A program made the translations under genes and the position numbers. Positions 5,501 to 51,080 of a stretch of DNA of 64,000 nucleotides are shown piece by piece. The stretch is from Trichosphaerium sp. ATCC 40318 (Eukaryota > Protista > Tubulinea), in assembly GCA_038496445.1 (NCBI GenBank), contig JALMLS010000017.1, forward strand, positions 186,001-250,000, written 5' to 3'. How positions within the stretch are numbered: the stretch's first letter is position 1; each line of letters starts with the position of its first letter. The notes beneath the pieces were generated by a model that had not been told where the DNA came from, ran no database searches, and saw nothing but the letters and a program-made list of their open reading frames with translations.

Positions 5501-7890
5501 TTTGATGACTGATGATAACTTCCATCTCGTCAAAGCGTTACGGATGTTTGACAATCAACATTTTTCGGTAAGTTGTTTAAGCCCCAAAAAAAAAAGTACT
5601 TTGTTTTTTGTTTTATTCATTTTTCTGTTTCTCTTTTAGGCAGCAGTTACATGTTTGGCTTGTGCTAAAGTACACCCTGTATGGCCTTTGGATCAAATTT
5701 TATTACTACTCTATGATTTCAAGAGACGTTCAGAAGCAGTTATGTTTATTTGGCATCATTTTAATGGTACGTTTTCTACTTGTTTCCATGAGCCAATACA
5801 GTGTTTTCTGATATTTTTAAACAGATTTAATGACGTCTGAGTCATCAGTCCTTCTCATATTCGATATACTCCTAAAAAGCGACAAATTGTTCCCTTTGGC
5901 GTTCACTTTATTGCGTTCATTGAAGCATAGCGGAGACAACAAGAAAATGGCAAACATGGGCTCTGAACAGGCTGAAATGCTACATCGCACCTTTTTTCAA
6001 AAAGCAAACGATCATAACCGTATTGAAGAAGTATTAGCCCTTCCTTTCAACCATGAAGAAGAAGCCTACTTATTAAATCAACTATCTGGAAAATCAAGAG
6101 AAGATGATTTATTATTTACATTCTTGTTTCATTTATCACGTTCAAGGCTTGGTGAAGCAAAAGCTCTTGCTAGTAAAATGAAACGTGTTTGCGCTACATC
6201 TAAAAACCCAAACATTAGTCAAGCGATACTACTCATTGACACATTATTTCCAGATGGCACAGAAATGGTACGACACCGTCTTCCACCGCATGTCTTTCTT
6301 TTTTTTTTGCAACTACCAAAAAATACTAACTTTCTTGTTCTTTTGTAAAGCACCTTGACGAGCCAATGCCATTAGTTGTTGAGTACGGAAACTTGAGGTA
6401 TATTTGATTATGTTATTAACGCATTTGTAGGTCTTCTATGGAGTCACCAAGAAGCTCTCGTAAACGTTCAAGTGCTGTATTTCGTGCACCTGAACCAACT
6501 TGGAGTCCTTTCAAGCCAAATCATGGTACAACCACACCTTTCAAATTACCAGGTGGTTTCCGTACACCTAGGACACCAAGAACAGGTAGTAAGAAAAAGG
6601 GACGGGTGAAGCAATCTCCACTTGTTGCTATACGCGATTCTCTAAGATCTTATCGTAACGTTCAATCACCTGCTAAGCCTGTTGATATTAAACAATTACC
6701 TGGTAGCGTCACTCCACGTAATAGCTTCCAAGAACCAAGAAGCTCTGTAAAATTAAGCCAAGGGTCAAGAGTATCATTGAGTAGCACGAAGAAGAAGGAT
6801 GGTAAATCAGAGTTAATGGAAGTTGATGCTGTAACAAAGTTAACTTTCGAAGATAATGATATGAATGATCGTAATATTATGGGTGATGATGAAGAAGAGG
6901 GTAATGAAGGTGATACAGGTAATTTACATAATGACGGACTTGGTCAAGCATTGTATGTTCTACCTGGTGATAGTCCTTCTCCTAAAGGTAAAAGTCGTCA
7001 CAGGAAACGTGGATTCTCTGAGACTCAGAGGAATATTATCTTACAAGACATTGATGATTTTACTGCACAACAAGATAAGGGAGATAAAAGTAAAGAAGCT
7101 TTCTCTCTTAGTGAAAATACACCTCAAGAGGACCTTATTAATGATGGTGAAGATTTGATAGATGGTCCAGATGATTTGATAGGAGAACCAGAAGATGATG
7201 TTATGGATGACGTTCAGGAAGGAGGTGATTTGATGGATACACAAGATGACTTCCAAGACGCAAACTCAGCGCTTGGTGATGCTGAAGAGGGTAATGATAT
7301 GATTATTCAGGATGCTGAAGGCGACGATGAAGCCTTTGCAGATGCTCGTAGTAACCTGACTGACAACGATATTAAACTTACTGACTTGGCTTCTGACGAT
7401 GAAGTTGACGCCAGAAGTGACGCTGAAGGAGACGCTCAGGATAGTGTTGATAATGGCGAAGTTAAAGAAGACAGTGAAGATGCTATTGAAATAAAAGACA
7501 GTGGAGACGAAGCTGATGAAAACAGCGAGTCAAAAGGAGCTTCACTGGATGAGAATGCTGTATACAACGACATTGATCTTGGTATGTCTGAAGAAGATGT
7601 AAACGAACCAGCTGAATCAAAAGATGAAGCTGTGAACAAAAAAGAGCCTGAGATTGAAGAAGAAGATAAGGAAGAGCCAGAGGTAGTGGATGAACCTGAG
7701 GATATTCTTCGTACACCTAGAAGAAGCCAGAGATTGAGAACTGTACCTAAAACAAGTACGCTTAGTTTTTTTTACTTGAAGGACTTTTTTCTGACTTTTT
7801 GTTAAAGACTATGCCTTGTTGTCTACTGGGAAAAAGTTACGTAGAGGTAAATCTTCAAGAGGAGGGACCGATAGCCCTTCAACTTTCTAG
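2542..7890 (+). CDS. ELYS/AHCTF1-like nucleoporin
   Basis: N-terminal beta-propeller-like exons. Helical ELYS-domain motifs (FLMTDDNFHLVKALRMFDNQHF; EEVLALPFNHEEEAYLLNQL; FHLSRSRLGEA). Long acidic, SP/TP-rich disordered tail ending in basic RTPRRSQRLR. Start approximate. Confidence 0.75.
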
Positions 7891-19545: not shown

Positions 19546-21238
19546 ATGGAAGGGGAAGACTACGTTGATCCTAAGATGAAGTTGAAATACTTACAAGAAA
19601 CAGTTGAATGGTAGAAGGGAATGCGCTCGTACTATTATTTTGACCGTAGTCTAGGATAGAAAAAGCTCTTCTACACGAAGACCAGAAAGAATTTAAAGTA
19701 GCTGTGCCAGCCTATAAAAACGCTGAAGAATCGATTGGGCATTGTTTACGTACACGTTTAACAAGAAGTGAAAAGGTAGCAATGCAATCAATGCTGCTTC
19801 AATCCGCTAACATTTTAAGCGTTCGATAGATTTGTTGCGTTGGATAGTTAAATTGCGCCAAGCACAAGCAAATTCCCACCTACCAAATTCAGAACCAGAA
19901 CCAATAACAGAAATACAACAATATAACGAGCCACAAACACCAACAGATGATGCGACTACTCGAACAACTAAAACAAATCCATCACTTTTCACAAGTGTGA
20001 TTGGACTACGTGAGGCCAAAAATGCTCTGCTTGAAGCTTTGGTGCTCCCACAGCGCTTTCCAGAATTGTTTGTTGGTAACAGATCTCAAGGGAACATATG
20101 TGCTAACTAGCTACTCAGGTTCTTTACAGCGCTCCCAAACGATACTCCTGTATGGGGTGCGTGTAACCGTATTTACAGTCCTAACATCTTCTAGCCTCCA
20201 GGTTCGTTGGTAACTAACTAGCACTTCAATCAAACAGTTTGCATAGGCAATGGCAAAACTATGTTAACAACTGCTGTGGCTGCAGAAGCTTCATTTAAAC
20301 TGATTACCATTACATCATCTAATATCGTTTCTATGTGGTTCGGTCAATCCGAACAGTACGCGCGCCAGTCTCCATCCAAAGTATAGGACTTACAATTGTT
20401 AGAAAACTTCGGAAGTTATTCGAAGAGAGCGCTAAGCAAGCTCCTGTTGTGATATTCTTAGACGAGATTGATGGACTGGTGCGACAACGTAATCAACAAG
20501 AAGATGAAACAACCCGAAGAATAAAGACGGAATTTTTACGTTGGCTAGAATGTACAAAGCACTTTATAACTGCCTTCCTAATGCATCTCCTGTAGCTCTA
20601 CCAGAGGGAGTATATGTAGTAGCTGCCACAAACGTCCCTTGGGATATAGACAGTGCTATCTTACGTAGATTCGATAGACGCCTGTATATCCCACTGCCAA
20701 GCGCAACAGCGCGAAAGGAAATGTTTTCAGTGCTGCTAAACAACACATGGTATTCATGTCTCTAGTATACACATTTTAAACAAAACACTCTGTTGTAGGC
20801 AGGATGATAATTTTCTCGAAGAGCTTAGCCTCCTATCTGAGGGATTTTCTGCTTCAGATGTGCGCTCAGTATGTAAAAGAGCTCTGTTGGTATGTTTTAG
20901 TGATGCTACGGCTTAGTATTAACTATCTCTTAGAGACCTATAGATAGTTTATTGCTTGTCAATCATTTTGTAGTTTTTTTTGAGAACTCCATAAAATACT
21001 ACACCCCGTGCGCAAAAAGTAATCCAGATAGCATTGAAATACGATTAATGGACATACACGATGGGAAAGTTAAACCACGCAAGCTTACAAAGGTTTCAAC
21101 GGACGATTTTCTAAAAATGAAAAAAAATCTAAAACTGTGTAGGATGACGTTCTTTTGAGTGTCAAGGAATACACTAGGACAGTTACCAATGCTCAAATAG
21201 AACAATACGCCCATTTTTGTGCTGGTTCTAAACCATAA
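19546..21238 (+). CDS. MIT-domain AAA+ ATPase of the VPS4/katanin/spastin clade
   Basis: N-terminal MIT-like helices; VIGLREAKNALLEALVLPQRFPELF; Walker A LLYG|PPG|NGKT; Walker B VIFLDEID; ETTRRIKTEFL; AATNVPWDIDSAILRRF; Vps4_C-like YTPC... Confidence 0.92.
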
Positions 21239-21528: not shown

Positions 21529-22680
<1,152 letters not shown>

Positions 22681-23954: not shown

Positions 23955-26900
23955 GTTAAACACCGTTTTCCTTGTTGCAAATAGTAGCTAGGACGAAGTT
24001 GCGTGCTTTTTCTAGTCCACAGTCAATGTAGATTGCACCAGTTAGGGAGGTAAGTAAATGGGCATTCATCTACGTGTTGGTGAGAAATGTATACAAAGTA
24101 GGCAACTTACTATTGTTGCTGTAGGAGTAGCGTTGCACGTCTTTTTCTCAGTATTTGAACGCACTGAAAGCATCTGTTGGCGCATGGTATGAAGCTCAGA
24201 AACCGTGGCTTGAGTATACGTATTGTATAGGTAGTTCTAGGAGCCAAGTGAATACGCATAGTTTTCTGTAGTTTAAACAAAGAATGCAAAGAAACCGTAC
24301 AGTAACGTAGAATGATGCGATGGCATTTCCAAGGAATTGGGTTCTACTACACTTCAGTTTACCGTTGGCAATGGTATTGGCTACGCATTCATGCTCAATG
24401 ACTCCCTCAAGAGTACTCTAAACGGTAAGCTATAACAAACATGCAAAAGCTTGCCTTGTGGAGTCTAAGAGCCGTCTCGAAAGTTTCAATTGCCGAAGCA
24501 GGTGCTGCTTCGCCATCTTGGCTAGCATCTCTTGTAGTGCCTATATATCTGTTAATAATAGCTAATGGTCGTAGAAATACCCTGTTTGCAAACACTGTCA
24601 TTCCACAAGTTGTAAAACAATGCGCTATGGTGTTCAGAGGTCCTCTTGAAAAAGTTGCAAGCTGCTTCAAGACCACTATCGAGGTAGATTGCGCCTATAC
24701 TAATTATGTGGCTGACATAGATGTAATACGATTAAGTACCAATGATAGCCTCTAGAATATCAGCTACTGTCTTTGCTTTTGAGATTTTTTTTTCGACATC
24801 ACCGGATAGTGTAGCCAAAAAATTATTCTGCTTGCAAATCTCTGAGAGTACAAGATTCGAAGTAAAGTGCTTTCTGCGAACAAGTGAGAATTTGTGAAAA
24901 AATATGGTGACATACTTAAGTTGGCTCAGTTGGAGTGCACATTTCTCGTTTGCACTTTCGTATAAGCGAGTTGATACCACTAAGTTTATTAAAGCGTCTC
25001 CAACGAGTTCCATATTCTCATGAGTTGCGGGACCTTCCTTTGAAGTGTGAAAAATAGCAAGAAAAAAAAGAGAAAGTAAAAAAAGGTTCAGAAAATCTCA
25101 ACTTGCATCTTGCTTTCCAAGCGCAAAATTTGCTCCTTGATCAGACACAGGTATCATAAACGCCTATGAAGTAATTTTAAGACGTTGTAGTAATTATATT
25201 GAACGAACTTTTTCGAGTAGTGCCTTGTTGTTGAAAACATGACCCTTTGGGTTTGCTTCGAATACGTTGCATCCAAGACATAGTTGAATGTGTTTAAGAA
25301 TAGCTGGGTACGTATTACACATAAAATACTTAATATCTCTATCAAAAAGAATAGTAAACGCATTGTTAAGTGGTATTGGGAGAACATACTCGGTGAGAGA
25401 ATAGAAAGTGACATTCTCTGGAACAAAATAGCGGCATGTTTTAGATCGTGAGAGCCTGCTCTGGTGTTCAATTTCTGACGAGATATAAAGACCAGTATCG
25501 AACAAGTCATATTCGCTGCAAAACGAAGTACATTCACACGATTTAGATTGCGTGTCGCAAATATTTGCGGCCTTCTTTGGATCTACAAATTTTAGTTAAG
25601 TTAAAACGTAAACTCAAAGGCAGCTTATTGTAAATGCCGTAAATGTAATGTAGGATGAGTACCGCGCTTTGGAGAATCACCAACAGATGCATCTAATCCA
25701 ACGAATTGATTCTTAGGAACAAAACCTAGGTTGAGCGCAGTAGCTGCTTCCTGAGCAACACTTAATTTTGCCAATTTTGAACTTCTATGAACACCAGCAC
25801 ATGTGTAGGTTACATTTTGCAGTGTAACTGACGATATCCAAGTATCATCTTCAGCTCTCCTCGATACGTTGTATTGAGGTTTCTTCCCAATCGAGTCACC
25901 ATATGAGTTAATCAGGGACACGTAAGTATTTCCAGGACTAGCATGAATACAAAACGCAAAATCATGCTTTGTTTCAATAACATCAGAACATTTTCTTTCT
26001 CCATCTTGTGGAGATAGGTTCGCGATGGCAATATCTGGCTTCTTTCCTTTGTTGATATTATACTTTGTAAACGTTGCTTCTATCCACAAGTTGAATCTCC
26101 AGCATGTCAAAATACTCTGAACCTCTTTATCGTCGTTGAAATCAGAAGATGATGTCAAAATATCGCTGATATTAGACTTGTTTGAAATAGGCCTTCTTAC
26201 GCTTGATGCGCTTATAAGTGGGCAGTATGGCCATTTTGTTAAGGATACAAGGCATAGTTGTTGTGAAATATGGTGGTGGGATACCAGAGTGACATCGACA
26301 CCTTTTTTTTCTTTCAAGTAAGCCTTTGTTGATGTCTTTCCTGAGTTACTACAAAACTCAGTAAAAGATGATGTGCATAGTAATACATCTATTTAAAACG
26401 TTGTGTGGTGTTAGTTCTCATTTAAAAAGAGACGAAGATCAAAGTTATCTTAAAATACACTTACCTCTCACACTTTCAGTTCTATTAGATGACTTGCTTT
26501 CGAAGAGTAAACCATTTAGTGCACGTTTTAGCAAGTAAGATAGTTGACAACTTTTTACTTGTTTTTCGTCTATTGGCCTAAACAAGTGAGGATTTTTGTA
26601 ATTTCAAAAGAAAACTGGGTACTTCGGAGCATCAACGTTCTCGGTAAAGAACCTTAGTACTTCATCAATTCCGTTATTCTAAAGGGACAGTAAGACGTGC
26701 TTGTAACCGGCTCTTGCGCACGTTGAACATTTCCACAATGTAGGAAACAGGTGTGGAATAGACACCAGTGAAACCATCAAGAATATTGTTAATGACATCT
26801 TGGTACTCCTTGTACGATATACCAACGTCGTTGGATAGTTGGACGATGTAATCTACTGCTGCAACACTTTTCAAAGCGCTTTTTATGTGTTATTAGTTTA

Positions 26901-27404
26901 GTAGATCACGTGATTGTAAGCGTACTGCTCGACATGTGCAATACTCTTTTTGCAAAGAGCAACACATCCATTACTGTCATCAACATCAACACTCTCATCG
27001 CTGTAGCAAGGGACGAGATACTGCGACTCACCGCTTCTAGTTGCTTTACGCTTTGGTTGATTCAATGCGAATTCCCAAAAGCGATCACAAACTTCCGTTT
27101 CTTCTTGGCTCAAAGTCTATTGAAATAAGATGTTAAGATTAAAAAAATGTGTAATTCAAAAAAAAAGCACGTGGGAATTGGTTTCCAGAAAATCGTAACA
27201 TACTATTTGCCCCAATTTGATAAACTCCAGGTGTTTGACAGGTGAGAAGAGCTTAATAGGTGATAAAGTGGAGTTTTTGTCCAGTAGAAGAAAAAAACCG
27301 CGAAATTCTTTACCATCTTTTAAAAAAGCTGGCGTAGTCGCCGTATCATACGCTGTATTGCGTTGAAGTGCAATTGTTTCGTCAATGTAGTACAACACAT
27401 TCAT
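23955..27404 (-). CDS. Dicer-like RNase III protein: platform/PAZ-like region, internal dsRBD, active RNase IIIa, degenerate RNase IIIb, no helicase
   Basis: dsRBD YVSLINSY..KPQYNV....WISSVTL..CAGVHRSSKLAKLSVAQEA (~25730-25930). YFVPE connector. RIIIa HENMELVGDAL...TVADILEAIIG. RIIIb SRTQFLGNAI..NYLY..ELHTMRQ...NAHLLTSLTGAIYIDCGLEKARNFV. The 3' end could extend toward ~23250 by further splicing. Confidence 0.85.
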
Positions 27405-27536: not shown

Positions 27537-29147
27537 ATGGCTTATATTGGCGTTGGCGAGTCTTTTTATGATATTAGTAATATAATTGAGGATTTAAAGC
27601 ACAGGTATGAATTACAATCGGTTTTTTTTTGGTTGACGCTCGTTTTAGTTGGTACTTTCGTATCTGGACCGGTCTCGCGTTTGTAGCGGTCGTATTTGGT
27701 GCGTTTTAAACGGAGAAACGATTATTGTACTTATTATTACAAGGTTTTGTTGCTCTTATTATCCTTGGATCACGACAGAACGGTTGGTGTCACCCATACT
27801 TTTACGAAAAACATTTTTTTGAAAAGAAATGTTTAACGATTTCTCATATACGCGTAACTAGGTCCTTTCTTGCGTGACTATGTTATTAAAAGTGAGAAAA
27901 TACTGTTTCCACCGTTCTCTTTGAGCTATGCTGGAGAACAGTCAAACTTTACCTTCTCTGCTGTTGATTGCAAGTTCAATAACGATTCCATAAAGCAAAC
28001 AAACTGTACCAGTATGTTTTTAATGAATCTTCTTTTAAAATCGCTTGGGCTAACAATGGATACTAGCCGAGGGCAACGAAACATGCCTACAATTTACTCC
28101 GGACGTTTACGCAGTCGTAAATAAGAAAGGTATGGAGAACTACTGTTTTTTTTTTGGAAGCATGACCATTTGACTCTATGTAGAAACCTACGCGCTCAAA
28201 TGTAATCTGGGCTTTGAACAAGCTGAGCAAGGTGACATGATCGCGTACCAAATCAATGGTACGTTCCCTATTAGTAGTACGGTTGCTTTTGTAACCTTGC
28301 TTAGGCTTGAAAGAGCTTGCTGATTACGGTGAGGAGGAAGTTTATGTTTCAATAGGCCAACGCGCTTGGGTACAAACCTTTGTTTATTTTTTCTTTTTTT
28401 TTTTTTTTTTTCTTTTTTGTTATCCATTTGACATATTTTTTTTGTAGATCTACCTGCATTTGACAGTCTTTTGGAAGTCTGATCAACCAACAGTGCGTGT
28501 CTCCTTTATGTTTAAATTATTTATAACGCCGTTTAAGGTCGAGTATACGCGTAATCTTGTGTACCATGGAGCAACGGCTGATCTAACATCAATGGAGCTT
28601 GAAGTCCATATTTCTTCGTTTAAAACATTCAATTATGTTGAAGCCACGTGGTATGATGGTTGGTCTAGCAACGCTGCTATCGGTACGATAAATTACAATT
28701 TTTTACTAAAAATTTAGGAGCTTTTTTTTATTTTATTCACAACTGACCTAATAACCGCTTTGTATAGGTGGTTTCTGGTGTTTCATATATTTCTTTTTCT
28801 ATTTATGCATGATTGGTGTTGGTTTTGTATTTGGAAATAATTCCAGATTCTTGAGAGGTAAGCAAGCACATGTGACAAATATTTCTTTTTTTTTGGGTGA
28901 TTTTTTTTTTAACCTTTTGAAACAAGGCGGAAGCGTTAAAAGAGCCCATGATGAGCATTATCAACCTATCGCACCTCAAACCGCTCAACGCACTGCTGGT
29001 GAAAATGCTCCTTTGGTATCTGCTGCACCTGTCGCTGCTGAACCTATTGTACCGCTTGATCAAAGTGAACAGCCAAGTGAGCCAGCCAAAAAAAGTTCCA
29101 CAACAGCTCCTCAAAACCAGACAAGCCCTGACTTTAATCAATTATAA
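27537..29147 (+). CDS. Two-TM membrane protein with a large extracellular loop (ENaC/DEG-like topology)
   Basis: MAYIGVGESFYDISNIIEDLKHSWYFRIW + TM1; post-TM1 ILFPPFSL; Cys/N-glycan loop; YVEATWYDGWSSNAAIGGFWCF + TM2; Pro/Ala/Gln-rich tail. Confidence 0.7.
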
Positions 29148-50249: not shown

Positions 50250-51080
50250 ATGTTTTGTTTTGGTATTGTACTTCTCTTCCTTCTCGTCGTCCGTAGCCAA
50301 CCATCTCTCAAATTTGTTGATAAAGAAGTAAACAGTGATGTATTGGTTGCAACAACCAAGTCTGGAACACGTGTACTTGCCAGGTATACCAAACACAAAG
50401 ACAAACCGAAGAATTGGCGTAAAGAACAGAAACAGAAGCTGAAGACGGAAAGAAGAATTCAAGGTCTGTTCGAATTTTGTCCTTACATAGCTCCAGAACC
50501 AAAGCACTTTAGAACAAAAACACTCGGATACACAATTTACTACGAGAAACAAGTAACAGCAAAAGAGTTTTGTTTTGCTAACGAGCGTGATGACGCATGG
50601 GCGGCTGGTGTTCTCTCATCGGTGCTAAAAGCTGTAGAACAACTTCAGGAGGAGGGTATTGTCCACAGGAACATCAAAGGCGAAACGATAAACATCCTTC
50701 CTGACGGTCGAGCACAACTTACAAACTTTTCGAACGCTAAACACGTGTCTGACCTCAATTCAAAAGAACCATTCTGTGGGACTCCAGGATACGTAGTACC
50801 TTATAAAAACAATCAAGTGAATGGAGATATGTATGCAGTAGGCACTCTCGCACTTGAACTCGCTCTCGGTATTGATAACACTCCTCTCCCTTTCTCGTCC
50901 AGATTACAATTTAATCCGATGGATTGGGTCGTTAATGAAATGGAGCGTGAACGTATGGAGGTGGAATTCGGCTCTGACGTGAAGAATAACATGTTGTTAG
51001 ACTTCGTTAAAGAATGCTCGAAATCCGATGCCGACGTTAAGGTACTGATGTCACACCCTTATCTCTTCACTCTCGAATAA
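50250..51080 (+). CDS. Intronless protein-kinase-fold pseudokinase with putative signal peptide
   Basis: MFCFGIVLLFLLVVRSQ leader; VHRNIKGETINI (HRD changed to HRN), LTNFS (for DFG), CGTPGYVVP, DMYAVG, LMSHPY. Confidence 0.85.
   Translation: MFCFGIVLLFLLVVRSQPSLKFVDKEVNSDVLVATTKSGTRVLARYTKHKDKPKNWRKEQKQKLKTERRIQGLFEFCPYIAPEPKHFRTKTLGYTIYYEKQVTAKEFCFANERDDAWAAGVLSSVLKAVEQLQEEGIVHRNIKGETINILPDGRAQLTNFSNAKHVSDLNSKEPFCGTPGYVVPYKNNQVNGDMYAVGTLALELALGIDNTPLPFSSRLQFNPMDWVVNEMERERMEVEFGSDVKNNMLLDFVKECSKSDADVKVLMSHPYLFTLE

Follow-up and report, generated by a model that had tools for sequence, protein, structure and literature searches.

A predicted Drn-type Dicer-like protein in Trichosphaerium with one intact and one substituted RNase III domain

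In Dicer and Drosha, the two RNase III domains of a chain come together as a single processing centre, with one strand cut by each domain. The interface of an RNase III dimer is made up of the signature helix together with the C-terminal GAIYxDxG helix. The effect of losing one half is illustrated by human Dicer, in which each domain likewise cuts one strand and hotspot mutants of the DICER1 RNase IIIb domain lose cleavage of the 5p arm, as outlined in PMC6695490 and bioRxiv 10.1101/005686. A reduced architecture is found in DrnA and DrnB of Dictyostelium discoideum, in which a dsRBD stands ahead of two RNase III domains and the PAZ, DUF283 and helicase domains are missing; dead catalytic residues are not reported for either protein (PMC4894637, PMC5056781). 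In Dcl1 of Paramecium tetraurelia it is the second RNase III domain that is mutated, according to the citation of Lepere et al. 2009 in PMC5871716, and because this account gives the protein no known function it offers a precedent for the half-dead state and not for a mechanism. In the trypanosome editosome the endonucleases KREN1-3 are thought to pair with KREPB4/5 such that the mRNA is cut and the guide RNA spared, and the degenerate RNase III domain of KREPB4, which has a conserved glycine, has been proposed as the non-catalytic half of a strand-nicking heterodimer (PMC5648035). KREPB4 and KREPB5 are separate proteins that act in trans within a large complex and carry U1-like zinc-finger and PUF motifs (PMC5648035).

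A live first domain combined with a dead second one is therefore already known among Dicer-like proteins. These precedents (Paramecium Dcl1, KREPB4/5 and the DICER1 IIIb mutants) make the dead-IIIb state of the locus described here less surprising than was claimed in a preliminary description of the same DNA, and the case is not unprecedented. What appears to be particular to it is that all four acids are replaced, in cis, in an orphan protein with the predicted layout of a Drn-type minimal Dicer.

Gene model and domain layout

We analysed a 64,000-nucleotide stretch of Trichosphaerium DNA (the window), the G+C content of which is 33-42% and mostly 36-40%. Both strands contain many short open frames with small GT-AG gaps in between, as is typical of eukaryotic genomes that are compact and have short introns. 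A spliced model built by hand places a Dicer-like gene of 14 exons and about 882 codons on the minus strand, running from an ATG at 27404 to a TAA at 23956. The coding region of this model (model A; 23956-27404) is a single open frame with a lone terminal stop, assembled from exons at 27404-27204, 27116-26926, 26878-26697, 26569-26465 and 26388-25663 (exons 1-5), at 25582-25209, 25163-25103, 25033-24916, 24873-24740 and 24694-24581 (exons 6-10), and at 24540-24455, 24417-24301, 24236-24111 and 24069-23956, the last of which includes the stop (exons 11-14). The 13 introns are between 37 and 127 nt in length, 12 being GT-AG and one GC-AG, and all 13 have usable splice sites. The 5' exons (27404-26465) are the least certain part of the model, and an alternative version (model B) has an extra 30-nt mini-exon at 26652-26623. 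From this hand-built model we predict that the Dicer-like gene is a real, intact and intron-rich protist gene.

The predicted protein opens with some 375 residues in which no domain is recognisable, followed by a dsRBD, a Cys-rich stretch of about 135 residues, RNase IIIa, a linker of about 65 residues and RNase IIIb. The dsRBD (residues ~377-445; 25733-25939, minus strand), which lies ahead of the nuclease domains, was called from its Pfam and PDB matches: dsrm at E 7e-4 and 20.5 bits, which is under the curated cut-off of 23, and dsRBD1 of TARBP2 as the closest PDB match (E 2.2e-4 over 69 residues). It was undetected by a home-made dsRBD profile of 5 sequences only, and the call does not draw on that profile. 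Pfam returned no PAZ, helicase or Dicer-dimerisation (DUF283) match on the exons preceding the nuclease domains at E values up to 1-10, in a search run exon by exon from which strongly diverged versions of these domains might escape. Zinc-finger and PUF motifs also found no Pfam match in the protein, and Pfam detected no C-terminal dsRBD after IIIb, a canonical feature of Dicer and Drosha; the protein ends about 10 residues past IIIb, with the stop codon at 23956-23958. The largest exon (241 amino acids) gave a pLDDT of 33 when folded alone by AlphaFold, and all scores from an ESM Atlas look-up of the exon preceding IIIa were below 0.8.

The presence of two RNase III domains on one polypeptide places the protein with the tandem (Dicer/Drosha) class, in which both domains have catalytic acids; IIIb is without them. 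The label 'Dicer-like' used in the preliminary description holds in the reduced sense of DrnA and DrnB and fails in the sense of a canonical Dicer, for which PAZ, helicase and DUF283 would all be expected, and the sole dsRBD precedes the nucleases. With a dsRBD, two RNase III domains and no PAZ, DUF283 or helicase match, the predicted protein matches the Drn type. This likeness is drawn from the published domain descriptions of DrnA and DrnB, not from sequence; the layout is the same, although the dsRBD of the Trichosphaerium protein lies ~375 residues in and not, as in DrnA and DrnB, at the very N-terminus.

The two RNase III domains

RNase IIIa (residues ~582-716) is encoded by four exons at 24639-25244 on the minus strand. 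It was detected both by Pfam (PF00636, E 9e-7) and, at 76.5 bits, by a home-made RNase III profile, which comprised 66 domains from 40 fetched RNase III proteins and was searched against the spliced model. The top PDB match is the Campylobacter RNase III 3o2r, and the nearest solved relatives in the PDB are bacterial RNase III together with plant and insect Dicers. Direct reading of the minus strand and the spliced translation locate the motif HENMELVGDAL at 25019-24990, with E622 at 25010-25008 and D626 at 24998-24996, and the motif VADILEA at 24767-24747, with D691 at 24761-24759 and E694 at 24752-24750. All four metal-binding acids claimed for this domain lie on the catalytic columns of the profile alignment, and the neighbouring E619 is also present. 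IIIa holds every residue required by the two-metal RNase III mechanism and looks active.

RNase IIIb (residues ~784-872; 23989-24360, minus strand) was recognised by the RNase III profile, hhalign, BLASTP and Pfam. Its coding sequence is divided among three short exons, and two acids are missing from the signature motif. The profile matched it twice, collinearly, at 19.2 and 11.6 bits, and the region as a whole scored 39.2 bits as against a maximum of 9.4 among 2000 shuffles. An hhalign comparison returned a probability of 97.3% (E 1.8e-11), BLASTP aligned IIIa with IIIb at E 1e-8, and Pfam detected the domain in the last exon alone (PF14622, E 7.5e-5). Taken together, these comparisons identify IIIb as a genuine RNase III homologue and more than a chance resemblance.

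In the profile alignment, S788, Q791, N795, H849 and T852 of IIIb stand on the columns where IIIa, like most of the fetched RNase III domains, has E, E, D, D and E. Q791 (CAA, 24339-24337) and N795 (AAT, 24327-24325) belong to the motif SRTQFLGNAI, and H849 (CAT, 24060-24058) and T852 (ACC, 24051-24049) to the motif NAHLLTSLTGAIYIDCG, both located by direct reading and in the spliced translation. The motifs quoted earlier for the two domains were found at the places given, and the reported losses in IIIb (E>Q, D>N, D>H and E>T) were borne out, with Q, N, H and T falling exactly on the four catalytic columns. IIIb is thus predicted to be a pseudo-nuclease domain in which every metal-binding carboxylate is replaced. 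D-to-N and E-to-Q changes at the equivalents of Aquifex D44 and E110 are classic mutations that leave RNase III dead for cleavage and competent for binding.

The fold and interface residues said to be kept in IIIb are indeed kept: the profile and hhalign alignments contain the glycine of FLG and the GAIYxDxG motif, and the domain retains FLGN with G794, the C-terminal GAIYIDCG helix and, within the signature helix, the pattern of hydrophobic residues. We considered whether the domain might be heavily truncated and ruled this out, Q791 and H849 being 58 residues apart as compared with 69 for the corresponding interval in IIIa; the apparent gap in the profile alignment of IIIb is mostly due to long inserts in other eukaryotic Dicers. 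An alternative IIIb exon bearing canonical acids was also ruled out. The six-frame translation of the window contains no other RNase III signal, and so there is no hidden exon with canonical acids to replace IIIb.

In these respects IIIb resembles the pseudo-RNase III domains of the KREPB4/5 type, in that QFLGN keeps G794 and the acids are gone, and the editosome pairs likewise combine a live with a degenerate RNase III domain in which the glycine is kept (PMC5648035). Unlike in KREN1-3 and KREPB4/5, the live and dead halves of the Trichosphaerium protein lie in one chain with a dsRBD, so that the dead domain is present in cis and not in a separate zinc-finger/PUF protein in trans. The DICER1 hotspot mutants, to the extent that they are described in PMC6695490 and bioRxiv 10.1101/005686, lose the same four metal-binding positions of IIIb and have a IIIa that still cuts. 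In those accounts the mutations are somatic, arise in disease and affect a full-length Dicer with helicase and PAZ, whereas the present case is the germline state of a free-living protist and its IIIb is otherwise much more diverged. Paramecium Dcl1 belongs to a different lineage and has no detectable sequence relationship to the Dicer-like protein.

Possible action and relatives of the protein

We propose that IIIb would fold back onto IIIa and serve as its non-catalytic partner in the usual pseudo-dimer within one chain. This would leave the Dicer-like protein with one active site in its processing centre, so that a single protein bound to dsRNA would cut one strand only, the one facing IIIa, and small-RNA duplexes would form only with the help of another copy of the protein or of a different nuclease. 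We give this arrangement, with its single active site and one strand cut per protein, about an even chance of being correct. The further idea of a nicking enzyme, which we infer from it, is plausible, being mechanistically reasonable and having precedents; that the protein is a naturally selected nickase of dsRNA or hairpins, feeding a small-RNA or RNA-processing pathway begun by one-arm cleavage, we regard as doubtful.

Live RNase III domains may also pair in trans, as in bacterial RNase III and budding-yeast Dcr1. On this model double-strand cuts would be retained, with live IIIa-type domains pairing between two copies of the protein, or with another RNase III encoded by the same genome, while IIIb serves as a structural or RNA-positioning module. 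The complete site on IIIa alone speaks for such an arrangement, as does the fact that homodimers are the working form of single-domain RNase III enzymes (PMC5648035), but IIIb keeps precisely the FLG glycine and the GAIYxDxG motif that would be expected for pairing in cis with IIIa, and we consider pairing in trans unlikely.

The Dicer-like protein may instead be a paralogue under relaxed constraint or in decay, or a dsRNA binder that does not cut (a decoy or regulator), in which the acids of IIIb were lost by drift. Several observations point in this direction. When 1.84 billion representatives were searched exhaustively by phmmer with the IIIa piece, a single weak match was returned, P0001, at 29% identity; both RNase III domains of P0001 are live, and it is not an orthologue. 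The 241-residue exon found no match in a word-index protein search, and two metagenome locus scans for the gene were likewise without a match, such that the predicted protein is a sequence orphan in the collections searched. Three of the four substitutions in IIIb need one nucleotide change at the first codon position (GAA to CAA, GAT to AAT and GAT to CAT), which fits a recent loss or decay, or else merely the shortest mutational path. Finally, in a FastTree of 64 RNase III domains IIIa and IIIb lie near each other on long branches in no clear class, the IIIb branch being very long; the tree fits an ancestral tandem and a local duplication alike. Against drift, the frame of 882 codons is intact over 14 exons with all splice sites usable, all five acids are present in IIIa, and IIIb retains its hydrophobic core and its interface residues, making this explanation, in our judgement, rather unlikely.

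The pairing of a live IIIa with a non-catalytic IIIb can also be viewed beside other tandem enzymes. We compared the catalytic columns of 22 fetched tandem proteins in which both RNase III domains could be fully mapped, and four of these (P0020, P0022, P0023 and P0024) have non-canonical acids in IIIb. The columns read K, E, D, K in P0022 and in P0023, an NCBI hypothetical protein of Willaertia magna, and K, E, D, E in P0024; in P0020 the first of them is R. P0022, P0023 and P0024 share with the Dicer-like protein a live IIIa and altered acids in IIIb, but the substitutions are different, some of the IIIb acids are retained, the RNase III scores are far stronger, and the tree indicates no evident close kinship to the Dicer-like gene. 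Since all four proteins combine a live IIIa with an altered IIIb, the half-dead tandem RNase III seems to be recurrent across lineages. Indeed, the Dicer-like gene, Paramecium Dcl1 and the Willaertia-type proteins together suggest a repeated origin of this state in protists. If the dead IIIb is under selection, the protein would carry in the germline what the DICER1 IIIb hotspot mutations bring about, would unite in a single chain the kind of enzyme/pseudo-enzyme RNase III pair found in the trypanosome editosome, and would provide a simple natural system for probing the use of a Dicer with one active site.

Splicing into IIIb and the genomic setting

The join between the linker and IIIb is formed in our preferred model by a 37-nt GC-AG intron (24418-24454, minus strand; AAG/GCAAGC...GTTTAG). 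The preceding exon (24540-24455) is without any GT, so that joining it in frame to IIIb needs this intron, and retention of the 37 nt leads to a stop after ...RLEYS. The GCAAG donor is consensus-like, and the other 12 introns of the model all have GT donors. Alternatively, a canonical 200-nt GT-AG intron (24580-24381) keeps the frame with a loss of 41 residues of linker, and the IIIb motifs are identical under the two joins. It counts against our main reading that the translation of IIIb rests on one or other of these, the unusual 37-nt GC-AG intron or the alternative 200-nt intron. The frame through IIIb, which had been described as staying open, is open once spliced in the hand-built translation and is not open in the unspliced DNA. 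The want of a GT donor in exon 24540-24455, the stop that follows retention and the rarity of GC-AG introns in most eukaryotes could be taken to mean that the join is wrong, the product having a single RNase III domain and the IIIb exons being untranslated relics, but this is improbable given that AAG/GCAAGC matches the usual GC-donor consensus, that the canonical join at 24580-24381 also enters IIIb in frame, and that each of the three exons of IIIb is open, in the correct phase and flanked by GT-AG sites, with a stop just past the domain.

Upstream of the Dicer-like gene, a divergent plus-strand gene apparently starts at about 27537, with exons that extend to about 29100 and a first exon that reads MAYIGVGESFYDISNIIEDLKHR. 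Only ~130 nt separate this start from the Dicer-like ATG at 27404, a spacing which suggests that the two genes share a bidirectional promoter. A run of about 35 nt that is A-rich on the minus strand, and T-rich on the plus, lies at 28380-28420 within the region of this neighbouring gene, probably in an intron.

The two longest ORFs of the window are both on the plus strand, at 50250-51080 and 6438-7805. The latter (455 amino acids) has zero Pfam matches. The former encodes 276 amino acids with a protein-kinase domain (Pfam E 1.2e-11), and a word-index protein search found no relatives for it. On the same strand, and judged by eye, exons at 20335-20765 have the look of an AAA-type ATPase (VIFLDEIDGL, NVPWDIDSAILRRFDRR) and those at 22134-22508 the look of a small Ras/Rab-type GTPase (ETSAKDN).
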